Source of the DNA: Octopus bimaculoides
Lineage: Eukaryota
Length of the DNA: 64,000 bases
Assembly (NCBI RefSeq): GCF_001194135.2
Contig: NC_068992.1
Span: forward strand, 27,619,709-27,683,708
Direction: 5' to 3'
Shown here: one piece after another, positions 6,785 through 62,684 of the stretch
Layout of the letters: each line of letters opens with the position of its first letter
How positions within the stretch are numbered: the first letter of the stretch is position 1
Notes under the pieces: generated by a model
The model's input: only the letters and a program-made list of their open reading frames with translations
Database searches by the model: none
Told to the model about the DNA's origin: nothing
Position numbers and translations under genes: made by a program

Positions 6785-8200
6785 TGGGAGCTCCTCTATG
6801 CTGATGACCTGGCCCTCATAGCAGAATCACTACCAGAACTAGAAAAGAAATTTCAGGTGTGGAAGCAAGGTTTAGAATCAAAAGGCCTTAGAATCAATGT
6901 AGCAAAGACTAAAGTTCTAGTAAGTAGGAAGGCGAACACATCACACACACCCTCAGGTAGGTAGCCCTGCTCGATGTGTAGAAAAGGTGTAGGTAGAAAC
7001 TCCATAAGATGTACCCAGTGTAAGCTATGGACACACAAGAGGTGTAGCAACATCAAAGGAAGATTAACCGAGAAGATAGCTTTCATGTGTAGCAGATGCA
7101 CAGTGTCAATAAACACCATAGATGCTCAGAAAACAGATTTCATCACATTCCAGGAGGAGAAACCAGAAGTAGTTGATAACTTCTGCTACCTAGGTGACCA
7201 AGTTAGTAGTGGGGGTGGATGCTCAGAGAGTGTTGCCACTAGAATAAGAATAGCCTGGGCAAAGTTTAGAAAGCTTCTACCCCTACTGGTGACAAAAGGC
7301 CTCTCACTCAGAGTGAAAGGCAGATTGTACGATGCATGTATGCGAACTGCCATGCTTCACGGCAGTGAAACATGGGCCATGACTGCGGAGGACATGCGTA
7401 GGCTCGAAAGAAATGAAGTTAGCATGATCCTCTGGATTTGTAATGTCAGTGTGCACGCACGACAGAGTGTAAGCGCCCTGAGAGACATGCTGGACATAAG
7501 AAGCATAGGATGTGGCATGCAAGAGGGACGTTTGCATTGGTATGGTCATGTACTATGGATGGATGAGGAGAGATGTGTGAAGAAGTGCCACTCCCAAACA
7601 GTTGAAGGAATTCGGAGTAGAGGTAGACCTAGGAAGACATAGGATAAGGTAGTCAAGCATGACCTTGAGCCTCACAGAGGCAATGACGTTGGGCCTCACA
7701 GAAGCAATGACGAAAGACCAAGACTTCTGGAGATATGCTGTGACTGCGAAGATCTGGCAAATAAAGTGAGTTCACGGCTGTATCCTACACCAGTTTTGCA
7801 TAACCAGCCCCAGCCCATTCAAAAGTACCTTGGATCATAGGGTGACCTGCTGTGCTTGAGGAGACCTATTGAGTCAAGTACATCAACATCAAAATGAAAA
7901 TCAGATGGAAACTGTAGTTGTGATACCCATGCCGGTGACATGTAAAAAGCACCAACCAATCATGGCCGTTGCCAGCCTCCTCTGTGACACGTATCCTCTG
8001 TGATACCCGTGCCGGTGACACGTAAAAAGCACCCACTACACATATGGAGTGGTTGGTATTAGGAACAGCATCCAGCTGTAGAAACACTGCCAGATCAGAC
8101 TGGAGCCTGGTGCAGCCTCCTGGCTTCCCAGACCCCGGTCGAACCATCCAACCCATGCTAGCATGGAAAATGGACGTTAAACGATGATGATAATGATGAT
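6785..8200 (+). mobile_element. 5'-truncated RTE-clade LINE: RT C-terminal half with an embedded PHD-like zinc finger, 3' UTR and (GAT)n tail
   Basis: Frame from 6785 reads WELLYADDLALIAES...GLRINVAKTKV (YADD motif), with one TAG at 6962, then ORF 6974-7642 with F.YLG, YDACMRTAMLHGSETW, RLHWYGHVLWM and RGRPRKTW-like motifs typical of RTE. Ends in gatgatgataatgatgat at ~8183-8200. Confidence 0.92.
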
Positions 8201-11621: not shown

Positions 11622-13625
11622 TCACACATGCACACACACACAAAGATGTTCACATGAAGCATTATACTTTGTTCGCTTATTTTGTTTTTTGTTTTTACTT
11701 CTTATGGTGTTATTATTTGATGTTATTGATCCTTATTAGACTTATCTATATTGCATGTTGCTCTTAACCCCAATCCAGTAATGGTGTCATCATCGTCATG
11801 ACATCATAACTATCATCATTGTCTGTGATGACATGATACAGTGCTGCATCATCATCAGTACTGCAACTAAATGGAGCTCAAGTACAACTTACCACTACTA
11901 TTCTTCTCAATTTTGTTTCATCTTTTCTGTGAGGCCCTCAGATCCTATAATCGCCTGACTATGTCTTCCCATGTTTTTATTTTTTTTTATTTTTCCCCTC
12001 TATCACAAGTAGTTTCCACTGTCAGTACATAGTAACTTTTTAATCTCACTAGAATCATCCATTCCTGTGTCCATACCAGTGCAACAGGTTCCTAACATGT
12101 AATAGACGTCCAGCTGGAGTTGATTGAATTGTCTTTAGCCATCCTCCAACAAACTTCTGGTCTTCTGCCAAAGTTAGGAATTCATCATTATAACAGGAAG
12201 AGCAAAAACAAAAGTAAACCAGACCATGGCTTATTAACCTTATTATATCATGTCAGGTTTCTAAATTTAAATCCTATCAGAAATAACTGTTTATGATTAA
12301 AAATAAATAAGTACAAGTAATGAACTAGAACCAATTGAATTTACAAGAACTTCTATGTGACCATGCTCATGTTAGAAATAGCAGCCAAATATTCACGAAG
12401 CTACACGCCACAGCCCTATAAAAAGGGCAGGACATGTAAGACAACTTTATTCAACATTTACTCCTAAAAAGACAGGATGGTTATGGTTGGAATACCTTTG
12501 AGCATGGGCTCAGTCCAGTCACGATTATGGATGGAATACCTTTGAACATGGGATTAAAAGCAATAACAACAACATTTTTTTATTCTAAAAATTTAACCTT
12601 CTACTTAGCCCAAAATAATTCTTCTTTATTGATAAGATATATAAAAAATTTTATAGGTTAGATATTAATTATTAAACTTATTCTTAGTATGTATACATAT
12701 ACACATACAAATTATATAAATATATGGTGTTGACTATATACCTGTACAATTCTTTTGTTTTTATTTCTTAATACATGTCATTATTTTTTATGGTGGTCAG
12801 TAAATGGAAACAAAAAAAAATCCTCTCTCCCTTCTAACATCAATATTCCATTTATCATCAATATCTTATTTATAAATACTGTAAAACAAGATACAAGCTT
12901 CCAGTCAGTTATGGTTGTAATGCAATTCAGTGCTTCATTGATACAACTTCACTTCATCCTGCTAATGCCCCTGTGAAAGCTATGAACATCCAAACATCTC
13001 TTTTTCTGTTATGCCTTCTTATAACAGACCTTTGTGACAAGTAAAGAAGCCAATATTTTCTTTATAATTAGAAAGGCCAACAGGTTACTATACTATAAAT
13101 GCATTAAAGTATTTCATTTCTTCTTTCTTAGTTTGAAGTTTAATCCCCTTTCAGAATCAACCTTGCCTTTTATCCCTACACAGACAATGAAATAAATACC
13201 AGTAATCAATCAACTATATGCCTACCCACAACAAAATATTACCCTTGCATCTAATCAAAAATATTTTGATGTTTGATAGTTGGGGGTGGGATATAAAATT
13301 TTCTATAAAAAAATAAAAAATATAGCTTCTTTTTCTTTTCTCTTTAACCTACTTTTAAAGTAATAAAAAATATTAATATATCATGTGGGTTTACATAAAT
13401 GTGTCTATTTTAAGGAGAATGTTTGTAAGTTCTTGCATTCTTTCTTTTGTACTTAATGGATAACATTTCTGTTGAATATCTTTCACTTTTTTATCTAAAG
13501 TATAGAATTAGTTTTTGGATACAAATTTTATCATAAGAAAGTAACAAAGGATATTGACTAAAATAAATGAGAAGGGTATGAATAAGAAAATTAATTATAC
13601 CTAACTATTCAGCAAAAGTTACTTT

Positions 13626-14372
13626 GAAGTAATGATTATTGCCACTTAAACATGGCTGTTCCATAGGAACTGACATTACTGCTATTTTAAACCCCAGAAG
13701 GACATCTCCTCTGGCTGGTTACTCGATGCAATCTGCACCTGATATATATTGCAAGCAGGGGAGTGAACGCCTACCATCTTACCACCAGACCATATGGTTT
13801 CAAACTCTTTGCGGTCATCCTTGGAGGTGGATACTCATCTGCTAGAGATAGAAGTAGTTCACTTCAGCTCACAATATATAGAAATCAAGTGACACACAGT
13901 CACTAATCTTGCAACAAACAAATTAGCTAGTTAGAAAAAATCCTGGGGTTAAAAGCAGCAGTAACATAGGTTCCAGTTATGTTCAAGTGGCAATAAACAT
14001 TACTTCTTAGTATAGTTACTACTTTCATCTGTTACTGAGATTTTCTAACTAGCTAATTTGCTTCTTGCAAGATCAGTCACTGTGTGTCACTTGATTTTTA
14101 TATATTGCGAACTGGAGTGAATTATTGCTGTCTCTAGAAGATGAAGATGAGTATCCACCACCAAGGATGACTACAAAGAGGTCAAAACCATGCAGTCTGG
14201 TAGTTTTGTGGCTGGAAGATGGTAGGAGTTCACTCCCCTGCTTGCAATATATATCAGGGGCAGATTGCATCAAATAACCACCCGAAGGAAGCGTTCTCCT
14301 GGGATTAAAAATAGCAGTAATGTTGGTCACTATGGAACAGCAATGTTTAAGCAGCAAGAAACATTACTACAC
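13626..14372. repeat. Foldback structure: two inverted copies of a ~350-bp element, the first with its own ~75-bp TIRs
   Basis: ORF track shows near-identical peptides on opposite strands (13639+ and 14073-14357 -). 13627-13700 is also inverted at 13941-14008. Confidence 0.85.
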
Positions 14373-16236
14373 AGTATAGTTATTGCTTTCATCTCTCAAA
14401 GATTTTCTAAAAAGTTACTTTATATGAAGGAAATATCTGATGATGAAGAACTCTTGGGTGCCAGTGTTGGTAATATTGCTATTTCATAATTTTTAAAGAT
14501 TTAACTTTAGAGCAATGAGTATCAATAAAGTGAAAGATCTACAGTAACCACATTTCCTCATATGTGCATGACATAATAGTAAGGCAACTAGGCTCTCAAT
14601 CATAAGGTCATGGGGTCAATTCCTGATCCAAGAAGCATACTGTGTCCTTAGAGAGGCACCTTCATGTTATATCAGTCTACTCATGAGTATTAAGACTGTC
14701 AGAGTGCCCAGTCACTGTCAAGTTAGCACGGAAGTATTAACATGTCAGTGGTACAACCAAAATCCTTAGACATGAAGAAGGATACCTCCAGCAGGGAACT
14801 AATAAATCCTATCATTACTTATATATATATATATATATATATTATACTAGTTTATTATCAAGTGAGAAATATTTATTTAGGTGTTTTAATTTTAAAATTG
14901 ATGTCTTTGGACAAGCTATTGGGCCACATTTTGATTTTTCACCATATTATTGAAAATATACAGAAAACAAGTTTGCCTTTCTTTTCTCTGGGGTTTGATA
15001 GAATAAAAACAAGCAACAAACAGAGTCAATGCAAACTTTCCTTTTGTTTTAGTCAAATTAGGAAGTGCCAAAGTTTTTCTTCAGGACCCCCAAAGTCTGG
15101 TGAGCAAATAGTCAAAGTTATATTCAGATTGGAGATCTGATCCAAATGCTTGCAACAGAGTGGAGTCCACTAAAGGTACTCACAGATACTTGTTGGTATT
15201 AAACCAGCCAAGTTTACCAGCCAGAATAGGGACAGTTCTTTTGACAAGCTTCCACAGTTTCCATCAACCAAATAACATTCAAAGTCATTGGCTGATCCAT
15301 ATTGAGGCCATGGTAGAAGATACATGGCAAAGGTGCAATGCAGTGGGATCAAACTCAAAACCATGTGGTAATGAAAGAAGCTTCTTAGCTACACAATCAT
15401 ACCTGAACCAGTATAATAAATTGACATCTAACAGTGATACATTTTTTGTTGAAACTAACTTAAGTCAACTTCCCCCTTCCAGCCTCTTTAGATTAATGAA
15501 ATAAGCACTAGTAACATGGTGATATTGATACAAATGATTCACTCTAAAAATATCAGTTAAAAGAAATTAATACTAATACATATCAGTACACAGTCACATT
15601 TGAAGCTTTTATTTTGTCTCATCTGGTGTTTCATGTTTCTATGGTGAAATCAAATTAAATTTGAATTTACATTTCATCCGTTATTTCTTACCAACATTCA
15701 GTATTTGGCCAACCATAATTCATTTCCTACAAAAATTGGTCATTTGCCAATTCAAAAATACAATCTACACTAATCTTGTCAGATGAGAAAAGTGATATAA
15801 AAAAAAAAGAACAAAAATTATAAACAAATTATTAAAGAAAAATCTCATCCATCACACAGACACACAGACACACACACACAGAGGTTTGTAAGCAAAAATG
15901 AACATTTATTTACACATTTTCATTTTAATTGTGCTGTACCTTTGCTTCTTGTGTGTGATTTATCAATAACCTATTCTGTCTTTTTCACCTGGTATAGAAA
16001 TATGTCTTCTGAACAGTGTAACATGTCAAGTAGGTTTATATAATACTTGACCTTCTTGTTGCCAAGAAACCAAAATATCTTAAAGTCATTTATACTATTA
16101 CTAATAGTTCTGTTCATTTTCCTTTTCTTACAAGTCAACATTTTTTTAAAAGCTAAGCTTCAAAAAGGCATTTCAAGCATGGAAAGTTAGTTATATTTTT
16201 ATGTTTAATGTTTATTTAATAAAATATTAATCATAG

Positions 16237-25964: not shown

Positions 25965-26590
25965 ATAAGAAATCTTTCTACTATAGGCACAAAGCCTGAA
26001 ATTTTTGTGGGTGGGGATCTAGTCAATTACATCAACCCCAGTGCTCAACTGGTATTTATTTTATCAACACCGAAAGAATGAAAGGCAAAACCAACTTTGG
26101 TGGAATTTGAACTCAGAACGCAAAGCCAAAAGGAATGTCACTCAGTATTTTGCCCAGCATGCTAATGATTCAGCCAGCTCAATCTCTTGATGATAATGGT
26201 TTCAAATTTCTTGTTGGAATGGAGAAGTCAATTACATTGACCCTAATGCTCAAGTGGTACGTATTTCATTGACCCCAAAAGGATGAAAAGCAAAGTTGAC
26301 CTCAGCAGAATTTGAACTAAGTATTTTGTCCAGCATGCTAATGATTCTGCCAACTTGACAAACTTATATAATTCTTTCTATTATGGGCACAATGCATAAA
26401 TTTTTAGGAGAGGGCACTAGTTGATTACATCAAGCCCAGTGCTCAACCAGTACTTATTTTTTTCAACCCTCAAAAAGAATGAAAGGCAAAGTCAACGTCA
26501 GTGGCATTAATACTCAGAATGTAAAGATCAAGGAGAAACAATGCAATTATATTGTGACTGATGCACTAACAAGTCTGCCAGTTCACTGCC
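25965..26590 (-). mobile_element. Three tandem copies of SINE family B (ggcagcgagctggcagaatcgttagc head)
   Basis: Repeated reverse-complement blocks gaatgaaaggcaaa...ggaatttgaactcagaa...cccagcatgctaatgattc; homologous to 53255-53470. Confidence 0.8.
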
Positions 26591-28144
26591 TTAATGATAA
26601 GCAAATGTATTGGAATCTGAAAGTATAGATTCCTATTTTGTTGCATTATAATTTTTGACTCACTTTACATACAGATCTATTTAAGGGTTAATTTCCAATC
26701 TGGGAAATTAATTCTTAATTAGACCAGTATCTTATTCTAAGAGATATTTACTTTCCTTCTTAACCCTAAAGAAACTTGGGAATAGTTTCTGAAAATAAGA
26801 TCTTTCAAAATGTAAATCTCTGAACAAACTAGTTGCCTAACACCTCAACCCTGGCCCACCCAACACACCTGTTTACCCTAGTCCTCTCATTACACCTATT
26901 GTGTGCAGCATCCACTCTCTTTAGATCCACATTAATCACTCTTCTCAGTCCTGTCCCTTCAAAGCACTAATCCACACAAAATCTCTCTCAACCTATGATT
27001 TTCCTGCAGACATCAATTTGTAGATGTTTGTCCAAACTGAACATTAAACTCATCCCAATCAATCTTACAAGTCAGAGAGAGTCTGCAACAGTTATAGGTG
27101 CAGCTCCTTACCAAGACTGGATAAATGTAGTGTAAGGCTTGTAACATGTTATAAATAGGCTCAAAAATTTTTTTTTAAATCAGAAACACAGATATTAAAA
27201 AACATACTTTTTACTTGCACAATGAACTATAATTTAAAAGTTACATTTTGTAGGTTTAACATGAGCAAACTTGTTGATGATAGTGGAAATGTATATTTCT
27301 TGCAGAAGTTCATGGTTAATGCTTATATTACAAGAAAGTTGTTAAATCTGTTTTGACCTATCGTGCTCCTTAGTTCATTTTTAATCCTTTTCAGTTTTAA
27401 AAATTATCCCCTTCCACCACAGTTGGTAACTATGAGTGACAAATACGCAAGCTATTAAATAGTAAAAATGTATACCTACAAAGTCTTATTTGGTGCTGAT
27501 ATGGAGAGCAATATCAGTTTTAAGCACTTTCTATAAGGTGTACAAATTCTTCAGGACTTTCTTCAGATATAATCTGACAAGATTTGATGATTACTTTACA
27601 ATCTCTTTATGTGTGATTGACTGCAACTTATGAAAGAATTCAAATAAACTCTACCACTTTCTTTTTCTGGCTGTTTAACAAAGCAGAAAACATGTTATCA
27701 TTAACAAAAACTCTAAATAACATAAGCCTGAGAATTTAATGAGCTGTCCAAGTGATGTTAGCATGGAAAAGCAGATGTCAAATGATGAGATCTATAGTGC
27801 TGGAACCACAAAAATCATTATATATGCAATTTTGCTTGTGTTCTCTTCAAATTTGTTATAATCTTCACTCTAAGTCAGGTCCTTGACTTTTTGGTCAATG
27901 CCTGGGAAAATAGACTGCATAGAAGAGTAATTAGAATAGTGGATAAACTGTCTTGTAGTATTTGTATGGGTTTTCTGCATTGTGAGTTCAAATCCTGCTG
28001 AGGCTAAATCATCCTTATGGTGTTATTAAATAAAGTATCAGTAAGTACTGAGATAAATTCTCTCTCTTAGAATCAGTTACATTGCAGTGCGAGAAGGTCA
28101 TGAGAAATTACTTATATTGTCCCTTTCTCCAGGAAAGTAACCTA

Positions 28145-39550: not shown

Positions 39551-40416
39551 CAGGGTGCGATGGGTAAATTGTTGCCATTTTATATTTTCAATTTCATGCA
39601 TGCACATTGTGTGTTTGTGAATTTGTCGACTACACAATATAGTAGGGTCAGTTGGGCACCGTTTGTGAGAAAAACAGCACCATGATGCAATTCACTCAGC
39701 CAGAAATTTGGAAATGACATGCTGTACTGCTCGGCATTCATGCTGGAAGCTCCAATATAAACATTTCAGAGCGTTTGGGTGTCAATCTGAGGACAGTGCA
39801 TGTGACAAGAGTGATAAAAATCAAACATCCAGTCAACATCATGGTGTTTGGAGTGATCACTAGTGATGGTGATGTTATGCCTCCATTCATCTTCCCACAT
39901 GGCCTTAGACTCAACACGGAGACCTACAACAAGTGCCTGAAGGAGGTAGTGCTGCCCTGGGTAAAGAGGGTGGCTGCTGGAAGACCCTATGCCTGGCAAC
40001 ATGACTACTCCATGTCACACAAGGCGAACCCAGTCATGACTGACACACAATTTCTGCGACCACACCGACCCTAACATCTGGCCACCTAACTCCCCAGACT
40101 AACCCCCTTGATTATTATGTGTGGGACACAATTAACCTAGAGACCAACAAAATACCTTGTAACACTAAAGATGAAATGACGGCAAGAATTATAGCAGCAT
40201 TCACCAAATTAAACAAGGAGACCATTGAGAAGAGTTGCAGGAGATTCCAAAGTCGTCTGAATGCTGTGGTTGAAGCCAATGGCAATTTTACTGAATAAAT
40301 TTACTCTTTAGTATTTCAAGATAGTTTTATGTAATTTTGATAAATATATTTGTTAAAATGAGATGTCAGTATTATTTTCATTTTTGCGTAATTTAGACAA
40401 AAGTTTATTCACAGAA

Positions 40417-53254: not shown

Positions 53255-53470
53255 AAGGCAGCGAGCTGGCAGAATCGTTAGCATGCCAGGCAAAATGCCT
53301 AGCAACATTTCATCCATCTTTATGTTCTGATCTCAAATGCTACCGAGTCAGCTTTGTCTTTTATCCCTTCAGGGTTGATAAAATAAGTACCAGTTGAGCA
53401 CTGAGGTTGATCTAATTGACTTAGCCCCTCTCCCAAAACTGCTGAGCTAGTGTCAAAATTTGAAACCAAT
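53255..53470 (+). mobile_element. SINE family B, full-length copy. Other copies at ~17760-18170 -, 27950-28070 +, 32215-32380 +, 33500-33655 +, 59195-59324 + (truncated)
   Basis: ggcagcgagctggcagaatcgttagc...ttctgatctcaaat...gataaaataagtaccagttgagcactg repeated throughout the window. Confidence 0.85.
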
Positions 53471-58422: not shown

Positions 58423-58462
58423 GGCGACTCGAGTTTCAGGGCTATTTCCCTTCGTCATGGCC
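58423..58462 (-). ncRNA. Minimal type-I hammerhead-ribozyme-like motif between (TA)n tracts
   Basis: Minus strand reads GGC-CAUGACGA-AGGG aaauag CCCU-GAAACUCGAGUC-GCC: stem I GGC/GCC, stem II 4 bp, palindromic ACUCGAGU stem III, GUC triplet; one extra or altered base at core position 3. Confidence 0.6.
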
Positions 58463-58530
58463 GGTATGACAGACTATATATATATAAGAATAAGCATATT
58501 AAAAGGGTTCTGTGGGAAAACTCATTTAAA

Positions 58531-58735
58531 GGCGACCTTACGTTACTAAGTCCCAAAGCTGTCACTTAAACCACGTGTGTTTATTTACATCACATCGGCC
58601 TTTTCCGTAAATGGGTGTTAGGGTTAGGGAATTCTGTCCCTAACCCTAAAACCCCTTTACGGAAAAGGCCGATGTGATGTAAATAAACACACGTGGTTTA
58701 AATGACAGCTTTGGAACTGGTAATGTAAGATCGTC
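58531..58735. mobile_element. Foldback MITE 1 (Mutator/MULE-like) with telomeric repeats flanking a 6-nt loop
   Basis: ~100-bp near-perfect inverted arms; centre gttagggttaggga-attctg-tccctaaccctaa; 9-bp direct repeat TCATTTAAA at 58522-58530 and 58736-58744. Confidence 0.85.
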
Positions 58736-58842
58736 TCATTTAAATAAAAGCGTTGGGAACCACTGTTACATACCAATGGTGCACCTGCGATCAAATAAAA
58801 AAATTACCTACGCAATTTGTATGAAAAATGCAAGAGTTACTA

Positions 58843-59078
58843 GGTACTACTAAAGCAGCGCGGACCCGAACGCGCAGTCGCGCGTCCGCGCCAGCTAGTC
58901 GTGAGTGGTCGATCCTAACCCTAACCCTATTCCTAGCCCTAACCCTAAACACGTATTCATTTGCACACGCGGGTTAGGGATAGGGTTAGGGTTAGGATCG
59001 ACCACTCANNNNNNNNNNNNNNNNNNNNNNNNNNNNNGCGCGACTGCGCGTTCGGGTCCGCGCTGCTTTAGTAGTACC
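58843..59078. mobile_element. Foldback MITE 2 (Mutator/MULE-like), GC-rich, with telomeric repeats flanking the loop
   Basis: Arms ggtactactaaagcagcgcggacccgaacgcgcagtcgcgc...tgagtggtcgatcctaaccctaaccct and their exact reverse complement, with a 29-N gap in the right arm; perfect 9-bp TSD GAGTTACTA at 58834-42 and 59079-87. Confidence 0.9.
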
Positions 59079-59346
59079 GAGTTACTAATGGATTTCGCAT
59101 GAAAAATGTTCAAAAAAATATTTTAAGATTAAAAATTCATAAAACAGAATTGTAGAGAACACTAATTATTTAGTTTTGGTAATTGTATTTGTGGCTAAGG
59201 CAGTAAGCTGGCAGAATTGTTAGAACGTCGGGTAAAAATGCTTAGCGGCATTTTGTCCGTCTTTATGTTCTGACTTCAAATTCAGCCAAGGTCAACTTTG
59301 CCTTTCATCCCTTTCAGGGTCGATGATCGTATAGTGTGTTTATGTG

Positions 59347-60895: not shown

Positions 60896-61579
60896 AAAGA
60901 AGTAATAGCAAAATAGCTGAAGTAACATTTTTGATTATCGATATCATTTCTAAAAATTATATAAATTACTGAGGTTTTGGACGCAAATATACAAGTGTCC
61001 CTCCTTACAATCACTCTTACTTTGTTTTCCTCATAATTCCCTGAAAAAGGAATTTTTAAAATGAAATTTACTATAAATACGTTTCAGAAGGTGTTGATTA
61101 CGATTATATCACAATTTGTTTTCACATAAAGTTTTGAGAGGGTAGAGAAGTTTTGAATAATTCACACTCTTCGACCTTGTTTCCTCCTACGTTTTGATGA
61201 AGTTGTTTACAATTACGTTGAAGAAAATATTTTTGAGGACTATTCCTTCGGGAATTTGATACGGGAATTTTTTTTTTTTTTTTAATAAAGAAATTTTCTA
61301 GACCTATGCCATGCCAAAAAACTATACCAATAAATACCTCTGATAATTAGCTTTCTTCCAACTATACCAATACCTCTGGACAATAACATTTGATGAAAAA
61401 AAAATATCCATTTAATAAATTCTTGAAGGGAGAGAGTAGAATAGTCTTCTTCAGTAATTTTTTAAAACATAATTGCATTCTAATTTATTAAAATGTATGA
61501 GGAAACAAAGTCAAGGTGCATGAAATATCCCCACCATCCTTTTTGTTTTTTCACATTAAATTCTGATATGATCATAATC

Positions 61580-62143
61580 GGTGCTACTTTAGTGTGCGGT
61601 CTACTGCAGTATTCGAATTTTGTGTGCAGTCTACAACAGTATCCTGTCTACACTGTAAAATTACTTTTAGCATGCAGTCTACTTTTTCTTACCCTTTTCT
61701 GTATGTCCATTACGAAAAAAACCACCAGCTTTAAAATCTCACACAAAGTCAAATTGCAGTGCAACCTGTTGTTGATGCCCGTATAATGAAAAAAAACCGG
61801 TTACCGTTCCAAATAGAACGCGAAGTTTGACTCCCTTTTCGAGGACAGTGAAATGTAGGCTGGTATTCTCCACTTCTGTCACGTTTTCGTTTTTCTTGCA
61901 TAACACTACCACATCGATGACAAGGGTCTGCTTCTTGTGATGTATCCAGAAGATTGTTTTCTTGTAAAAATGCAACTGCTGTTTTCTCTGTAAAAATTAT
62001 ATGTCTATAGAAATCCTTTAACAGCATTGTAATGGTTAAAATTAACTCAGGTTAAGAGGGTAAGAAAAGGTAGATCGCACGCCTAAAAGTAATTTCACAG
62101 CATAGACAGGATACTGCAGTAGACCGCATGCTAAAGTAGCACC
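61580..62143 (-). mobile_element. Non-autonomous Merlin (IS1016-like) DNA transposon
   Basis: TIRs ggtgctactttag(t/c)(g/a)tgcggtctactgcagtat; 8-bp TSD tcataatc / tcacaatc; minus ORF 61749-62027 with an N-terminal zinc ribbon (AFLQENNLL...PCHRCGSVM...FHCPRKG...RSIWNG.RFF); subterminal repeats; no DDE domain. Confidence 0.85.
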
Positions 62144-62684
62144 TCACAATCTCCAATGCTTGAAACATATTTGTAGATAGTTTCATTAAAAAAAAGTCGG
62201 TGGCACACAAGTACAAGTACTAGTACTGGTGGCACACAATAAGCACCATTCTTGCCCATCCCCCGTGAAACCATCTAACCCATGCCAGCATGGAAAACAG
62301 ACGTTAAACGATGATGATGATGATGTAAAATAACACCGTAGACAGAAACAAGTTCAGCTGATTCCTCTTTTACTATCCACAGAGAAATTGTTTAAAACAC
62401 AGACGTTTATAGCTTTCCAGTGAGTTTACACACACACACATTGTTGACTGAAGTCCAGAGATATATTTTGTTATATAGTATTAGATTAGATATAGTAAAA
62501 GATTGATACAGGAATTGTATTTTGAAAAAATTTTGATGTCTATTTACTGCACACATATGCATGCAGACACACACAAACACACATATTAATCCCAGATATA
62601 CCAATGCAATTTCGTATTTTTATGCTTGTCTTCACTGATAGTGGATAAGGTTGCTGTCATATGAGTTAAGTGTCCCTAACAAAT

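Follow-up and report, generated by a model that had tools for sequence, protein, structure and literature searches.

Two unrelated hairpin-forming elements, here called E1 and E2, lie 107 bp apart in a 64,000-nt stretch of Octopus bimaculoides DNA (the window, meaning the whole of the DNA that was analysed), and each carries the host telomere repeat at the centre of its hairpin. The first-pass annotation had described two independent foldback insertions with terminal inverted repeats (TIRs) about 100 bp apart, with unrelated arms and with TTAGGG repeats beside the central loop in opposite polarity, G-strand first in E1 and C-strand first in E2. These points were upheld; both elements are non-coding, near-complete palindromes and each has its own exact 9-bp duplication, as had also been claimed (TCATTTAAA for E1 and GAGTTACTA for E2). 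The hexamers are the only sequence that the arms of E1 and E2 have in common, and TTAGGG is the telomere unit of molluscs. Their content is unusual, a host telomere repeat being placed at the hairpin centre on two unrelated backbones and in opposite polarity; the new result is the assignment of E2 to Merlin and not to Mutator.

Both elements have the structural features of a MITE: they are small (205 and 236 bp), they have TIRs and a duplication, and they contain no ORF with relatives. Because long TIRs and an exact duplication are combined with small size and the lack of a gene, E1 and E2 are classed as non-autonomous cut-and-paste transposons of the foldback/MITE type. The explanation that is favoured as a whole, in which they are by structure unrelated non-autonomous MITE-type hairpins, each of them single-copy in the window, is probably correct. 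The positions of the elements and of their parts are collected in Table 1.

Table 1. Positions of E1, E2 and the Merlin-related features (positions are those of the window).
Feature	Position	Strand	Remarks
E1 foldback TIR element	58531-58735	.	205 bp; arms, hairpin, duplication
E1 left arm	58531-58630		
E1 loop	58631-58636		ATTCTG
E1 right arm	58637-58735		
E1 target-site duplication, left copy, TCATTTAAA	58522-58530	.	identical to 58736-58744; abuts E1
E1 target-site duplication, right copy, TCATTTAAA	58736-58744	.	
E1 telomeric core	58617-58650	.	(TTAGGG)2, 6-nt loop, (CCCTAA)2
E2 foldback element, Merlin-type termini GGTACTACTAAAGC	58843-59078	.	236 bp including 29 N
E2 target-site duplication, left copy, GAGTTACTA	58834-58842	.	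identical to 59079-59087
E2 target-site duplication, right copy, GAGTTACTA	59079-59087	.	
E2 telomeric core	58913-58997	.	C-strand tract, loop, G-strand tract
E2 C-strand tract	58913-58948		36 nt
E2 loop	58949-58970		22 nt
E2 G-strand tract	58971-58997		27 nt
Assembly gap within E2 right arm	59009-59037	.	29 N
Internally deleted Merlin transposon	61580-62143	-	564 bp; TIRs, duplication, ORF homology
External loci with a DDE_Tnp_IS1595 domain			L011, L012, L014, L016, L020, L022

The arms of E1 match each other at 91 of 100 positions, and seven of the nine differences lie within the outer 35 nt. The core reads GTTAGGGTTAGGGA / ATTCTG / TCCCTAACCCTAAA with an asymmetric loop; from either terminus the G-strand is read inward, 5' to 3'. 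As single-stranded DNA the element folds into an end-to-end hairpin (-96.8 kcal/mol, z = -23). Its termini are GGCGACC... and ...GATCGTC, the end letters being GGCGACCTTACG and GACGATCTTACA, and the longest open frame within it has 35 codons. A tenth base, the C at 58521 and 58735, is also identical on the two sides, so that the duplication is 9 or 10 bp; it is taken as 9 bp, the length at which symmetric termini are preserved. A fragment at 58424-58476 that begins GGCGAC was considered as a relative of E1 and was rejected, the similarity not being significant.

In E2 the outer arms (58843-58883 and 59038-59078) match at 41 of 41 positions, the inner arms (38 nt) are 95% complementary, and the folding energy of the inner hairpin is -42.9 kcal/mol (z = -11). 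From each terminus inward the C-strand comes first. A variant unit, ATAGGG, is common to both arms and lies at an equal distance from the arm junction in each; the left arm has one more degenerate unit than the right, and the G-strand tract has four GGG runs separated by 3-nt spacers. The arms are 66% G+C, with a GCGC motif recurring about every 8 nt. Open frames across E2 have 50-65 codons, and a comparison of the 60-codon frame with 1.84 billion representative proteins returned low-complexity RV-repeat proteins only. Rfam and tRNA scans gave nothing at threshold. Below threshold, the mir-3099 precursor was matched on the telomeric hairpin of E2 (58908-59002, plus strand; 40.6 bits, the gathering score being 95), a match that most likely reflects merely a hairpin of telomere-like repeats. 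E2 has inserted into a tandem repeat of about 33 bp that is present locally in two copies, 74% identical (58804-58830, TTACCTACGCAATTTGTATGAAAAATG; 59082-59108, TTACTAATGGATTTCGCATGAAAAATG), and the flanks therefore seem partly repeated beyond the true 9-bp duplication. A SINE-like dispersed repeat lies directly downstream (59197-59325), and the window has several other, diverged copies of it, for example at 53255-53379 and 26063-26593 (69-85% identity).

The right arm of E2 is interrupted by an assembly gap. The 11 nt ahead of the gap are an exact mirror of 58902-58912 in the left arm and the 41 nt past it an exact mirror of 58843-58883, while the target-site duplication closes across it; on both grounds, one insertion spans the gap. 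The stretch of left arm that faces the 29 N is 18 nt long (58884-58901). The real gap is probably about 18 nt long, some 11 nt below the 29 N, and its content, read from the opposite arm, is predicted to be CGACTAGCTGGCGCGGAC. No reading frame is affected. A break in one arm of a palindrome is the outcome that would be expected of a short-read assembler, and the E1/E2 locus provides a worked case of a palindromic insertion causing an assembly gap.

It could be argued that the palindromes are themselves artefacts of assembly or of the library, produced by chimeric fold-back reads or by a mis-scaffolded gap; palindromes are difficult to assemble, and the scaffold has seven N gaps in the window, one of them within E2. 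However, 9 bp of unique flanking sequence are duplicated exactly on the two sides of each palindrome, the arms of E1 contain mismatches around an asymmetric loop and those of E2 differ by one repeat unit, whereas artefactual fold-backs would be perfect and would have no duplications. An artefactual origin is considered extremely improbable.

It is clear that the structures of E1 and E2 are real and well beyond chance; the elements are ordinary in kind and unusual in content. Of about 63,700 window positions, only 2-3 have an exact abutting direct repeat of at least 9 nt at the same spacing. The telomeric dimer TTAGGGTTAGGG, allowing at most one mismatch, occurs eight times in the 64 kb, against an expectation of 0.16, and all eight fall inside E1 or E2, where hexamer tracts occupy the inner end of both arms in each element, with opposite polarity between the two. 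A lax scan of the whole window for TIRs with 8-10-bp duplications returned E1 and E2 only, a count that by itself proves nothing since block-shuffled controls of the same scan give about two hits. No further copies of either element, of the kind that would make it a repeated family as a MITE is by definition, were found within the 64-kb window (blastn, word size 7). Exact arm patterns gave no matches in bacterial and archaeal genomes; in public metagenome and viral contigs they gave isolated 19-21-mers without extension, on contigs that are unrelated and mostly G+C-rich.

Both elements look young, because their duplications are intact, the outer arms of E2 are perfect and CpGs have been kept in a CpG-depleted genome; the ratio of observed to expected CpG is 0.95 in E1 and 1.33 in E2, against 0.27 in the whole window, which is strongly CpG-depleted. 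The corresponding empty sites are predicted to read ...AAAACTCATTTAAATAAAAGC... and ...GCAAGAGTTACTAATGGATT....

With about 32% G+C the window is AT-rich; it contains other repeat-related features. An ORF at 6974-7642 (plus strand) is the C-terminal reverse-transcriptase/PHD-finger ORF of a LINE-type retrotransposon, and its best named relatives are Octopus bimaculoides and O. vulgaris proteins at 70-77% identity. A large inverted structure at 13620-14376, whose arms measure about 320 nt, are 83-88% complementary and enclose a spacer of about 100 nt, has no telomeric repeats; it could be an inverted SINE-like pair or another foldback element. Two adjacent open frames at 39718-40295 (plus strand) gave only weak helix-turn-helix matches in Pfam, and we presume them to be candidate remains of a decayed Tc1/mariner transposase.

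Merlin elements are characterised by TIRs of 24-462 bp, a conserved terminal GG and duplications of 8 or 9 bp, and Octopus bimaculoides, with 191 Merlin sequences, was named among the Merlin-richer species of the survey concerned (PMC8101967). The earlier statement that E1 and E2 begin with GG holds for both ends of E2 (GGTAC) and for the left end of E1 (GGCGAC), and fails for the right end of E1, which is GA on the complementary strand (GACGAT); the terminal GG of Merlin is thus found at both ends of E2 and at the left end only of E1. The exact 9-bp duplications of the two elements lie within the Merlin range. Combined with long TIRs, they also agree with the Mutator/MULE-Foldback group, in which the first-pass annotation had placed both elements; duplication size and long TIRs are common to MULE and Merlin and are therefore non-discriminating.

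The termini of E2, GGTACTACTAAAGC, agree with an external Merlin consensus, GGTGCTACTATAGC, at 12 of 14 bases. With at most two mismatches this consensus is found at exactly four sites in the window, namely both ends of E2 and both ends of an internally deleted Merlin copy, where 0.24 sites would be expected by chance, and four were reached in none of 100 shuffles. The two ends of E2 are copies of one another and therefore amount to one independent observation only; the match falls at the exact terminus of an element that had been delimited beforehand by other criteria. E2 is assigned to Merlin because its tips match the Merlin consensus and because 2.5 kb away there is a deleted Merlin copy whose TIR is related to its own, though not identical, and for this element the Mutator/MULE-Foldback placing is abandoned. 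Beyond the terminal 14 nt the E2 arm showed no significant similarity to Merlin (p 0.3-0.9), and a second, subterminal Merlin motif in the arm was tried and rejected, the local alignments being no better than those of shuffles. The three related-TIR Merlin copies that could be evaluated all have 8-bp duplications, against 9 bp in E2. The conclusion drawn from the sequence is that E2 appears to be a Merlin-type (IS1595-like) MITE, whose likeness to Merlin is confined to the terminal 14 nt and whose duplication is 9 and not 8 bp.

The Merlin copy neighbouring E2 has 33-nt TIRs that start GGTGCTACTTTAG and match at 31 of 33 positions, and an 8-bp duplication, GATTGTGA at 62144-62151 and GATTATGA at 61572-61579, that matches at 7 of 8. 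Its sole remaining ORF, an N-terminal zinc-ribbon (62051-61752, minus strand), gave no match in Pfam or NCBIfam; we took it to resemble the zinc-ribbon N-terminus of IS1595-type transposases. A profile was made from this ORF and two Logan homologues, and relatives were located on long ENA and JGI contigs. In six loci that were fetched, the homologous ORF is followed on the same strand, either about 50-240 nt further on or with a short overlap, by an ORF with the PF12762 DDE_Tnp_IS1595 domain. With the N-terminus of one relative, P0127, the window ORF shares 68% identity (E 8e-41), and the loci of P0127 and of a second relative, P0128, both run into such ORFs. The Merlin identity of the window ORF follows solely from this continuation of homologous loci into a DDE_Tnp_IS1595 ORF. 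The external Merlin elements have a strongly conserved TIR, GGTGCTACTATAGCGTGAGGTCTACC, with GG termini and 8-bp duplications; in one of them (L022:9735-11145) GAGAATTT flanks both sides. No telomeric repeats were found in the related-TIR Merlin copies, either in the window or elsewhere. The external loci were also considered as octopus DNA and this was rejected; they have only the Merlin ORF in common with the window and are therefore from other taxa.

The termini of E1 matched no element that was retrieved, Merlin elements included, and both Merlin and MULE are candidates for its superfamily. A reading in which both E1 and E2 are Mutator/MULE-Foldback elements, moved by a MURA-type transposase, would agree with this lack of a Merlin match for E1, and a 9-bp duplication with long TIRs suits MULE and Foldback elements. 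Mutator families are, further, reported as recently active in O. vulgaris, as are Merlin and MITE families (PMC13282606). Against this, the terminal 14 nt at the exact ends of E2 match the Merlin consensus, the signature of Merlin is the combination of GG termini and 8-9-bp duplications (PMC8101967) and no MULE sequence was recognised in the window; the placing of both elements in the MULE-Foldback group is unlikely to be right.

Whatever the superfamily of E1, both elements would have arrived by cut-and-paste insertion at a staggered 9-bp cut, with a DDE transposase supplied from elsewhere; the mobiliser of E2 was likely the transposase of the nearby Merlin lineage, or of a close relative that makes 9-bp duplications. 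For the telomeric core, we infer that the most likely origin is an inverted duplication of a transposon end together with a telomere-like tract, a proposal whose chances of being right or wrong are about evenly balanced. A single transposon end, with adjacent DNA ending in a short telomere-like tract, would have been made palindromic either in a sister-chromatid fusion or in snap-back synthesis at microhomology of a few bases; the outcome would be a small new element with two identical ends that a transposase could move. The hexamers would then be passengers, outside the transposition machinery. The presence of ATAGGG at the same position in both arms indicates that the E2 tract was copied together with its arm, and a tract that was inverted-duplicated with its arm is therefore one independent tract per element, not two. 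Since the related-TIR Merlin copies have no telomeric repeats, the tract does not belong to the parental TIR.

The polarity of the tracts bears on how they could have been acquired. In E1 the order (arm, TTAGGG, centre) is the one that a healed 3' end or a sister-telomere fusion would give; in E2 the order is reversed (arm, CCCTAA, loop), and addition to a 3' end cannot yield it. It has been proposed that telomerase added repeats to the tips of broken hairpins or cruciforms, or to excised ends, which were then re-joined. The polarity of E1 matches 3'-end addition followed by fold-back or sister fusion, and in mammals the insertion of short telomeric tracts by telomerase at double-strand breaks is documented (PMC7215372). 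However, the polarity of E2 is the opposite, the equal distance of ATAGGG from the junction in both of its arms indicates that the tract was doubled as part of the arm and not by two additions, and mirror-image tracts would not result from separate additions to either side of a broken cruciform. The healing of two broken cruciform ends, as the first-pass annotation had suggested, is thus disfavoured by the mirrored ATAGGG and the polarity of E2, and telomerase addition with re-joining is left with a slight chance.

A passenger origin by itself leaves a coincidence unexplained, in that both elements carry the same hexamer at the same internal position and the remainder of the 64 kb lacks it. 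E1 and E2 are the window's only clean elements with TIRs and a duplication, and the host telomere unit occupies the same place in the structure of each. This coincidence keeps alive both a mechanistic link between telomeres and palindromes and a selected function, each at low probability.

Were the core under selection for a function, the binding of Myb-type telomere proteins or the formation of G-quadruplexes or hairpin RNAs might help the elements to spread or to be tolerated. The confinement of the window's telomeric dimers to one structural position on two unrelated backbones is consistent with such a role, as are the four GGG runs with 3-nt spacers in the G-strand tract of E2 and the internal (TTAGGG)7 of a small TIR element of another taxon (L021:493-651). 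Conversely, E1 has merely two units per arm, the opposite polarity of E1 and E2 speaks against a strand-specific role, and the related-TIR Merlin copies have no such repeats; a function for the core is putative and is regarded as improbable.

The element of the other taxon (ENA ERZ22157276 ctg13741l) is unrelated to E1 and E2; it is 159 bp long, has the TIR TGGGTCTTGTTTGAAATTCGGACTG and a flanking 6-bp direct repeat, TCTATC, and its (TTAGGG)7 tract has a single orientation. The contig has another short telomere-like tract at L021:1092-1108. Telomeric tracts in small TIR elements are therefore not confined to the E1/E2 locus.

A broader possibility is that telomere-centred foldback MITEs are a recurrent cephalopod class, produced by a specific mechanism in which a transposon end beside a telomeric tract is made palindromic, or that their core is kept by the recruitment of telomere proteins. 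The routes to such a class would be sister-chromatid or telomere fusion, or fold-back repair, beside a telomere or an internal telomere-like tract. This is judged decidedly unlikely; if true, two unrelated backbones within 350 bp of a random 64-kb window would imply thousands of such elements genome-wide. A telomeric core, were it regular, would tie chromosome-end biology to the birth of mobile elements, and would supply cephalopod genomes, whose heavy transposon load and rearrangement are already known, with scattered internal telomere-like sites that might act as fragile sites, as binding sites for proteins or as sources of hairpin RNA. If E1 and E2 are two isolated cases, the value is smaller, and E2 with the copy at 61580-62143 documents a Merlin lineage and a MITE derived from it.

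Among known systems, Merlin elements and Merlin MITEs resemble E1 and E2 in their GG termini, 8-9-bp duplications and TIRs in the 24-462-bp range (Feschotte 2004, summarised in PMC8101967). E2 resembles more specifically the Merlin lineage that encodes DDE_Tnp_IS1595, whose terminal 14 nt it matches and of which a deleted copy lies in the window. Unlike the Merlin copies, E2 is a near-complete palindrome with G+C-rich arms, a telomeric core and a 9-bp instead of an 8-bp duplication, and it has only the tips in common with them. E1 shares with Merlin the generic signature only.

Ciliate TBE transposons are several kilobases long and coding, with telomeric repeats at their extreme termini and a 3-bp duplication. 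They are like E1 and E2 in being DNA transposons that carry the host telomeric repeat within inverted repeats, whereas the repeats of E1 and E2 are central and the elements themselves are tiny and non-coding, with 9-bp duplications and GG termini. TBE had been cited at first as a MULE-related precedent, but the Oxytricha TBE elements belong to Tc1/mariner (PMC4724952). Interstitial telomeric sequences left by break repair are, like the cores of E1 and E2, short (TTAGGG)n tracts at internal chromosomal sites (PMC7215372). The break-repair tracts have a single orientation and no inverted arms, TIRs or 9-bp duplications, whereas those of E1 and E2 are mirrored within TIR elements that have duplications. 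Telomere-associated Penelope-like retroelements are mobile and carry short species-specific telomeric tracts, as do E1 and E2; they differ in that they reside at chromosome ends, have terminal repeats, encode a reverse transcriptase and have no TIR or duplication.

In the full-text literature outside subscription journals and Repbase Reports, no account was found of foldback MITEs built around telomere repeats. In overall architecture a comparison can be made with Foldback elements, which include Drosophila FB / MULE-NOF and the plant FARE and Hairpin elements. These consist mostly of inverted repeat, have 9-bp duplications and short tandem repeats in the inner arms, and code for little or nothing; in the classical cases the inner repeats are family-specific minisatellites and not the host telomere unit. 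E1 and E2 are like them in being nearly all inverted repeat, in their 9-bp duplications and inner-arm tandem repeats and in their lack of coding capacity, and unlike them in having the host telomere unit as the inner repeat and, for E2, in having termini that indicate Merlin and not MULE.
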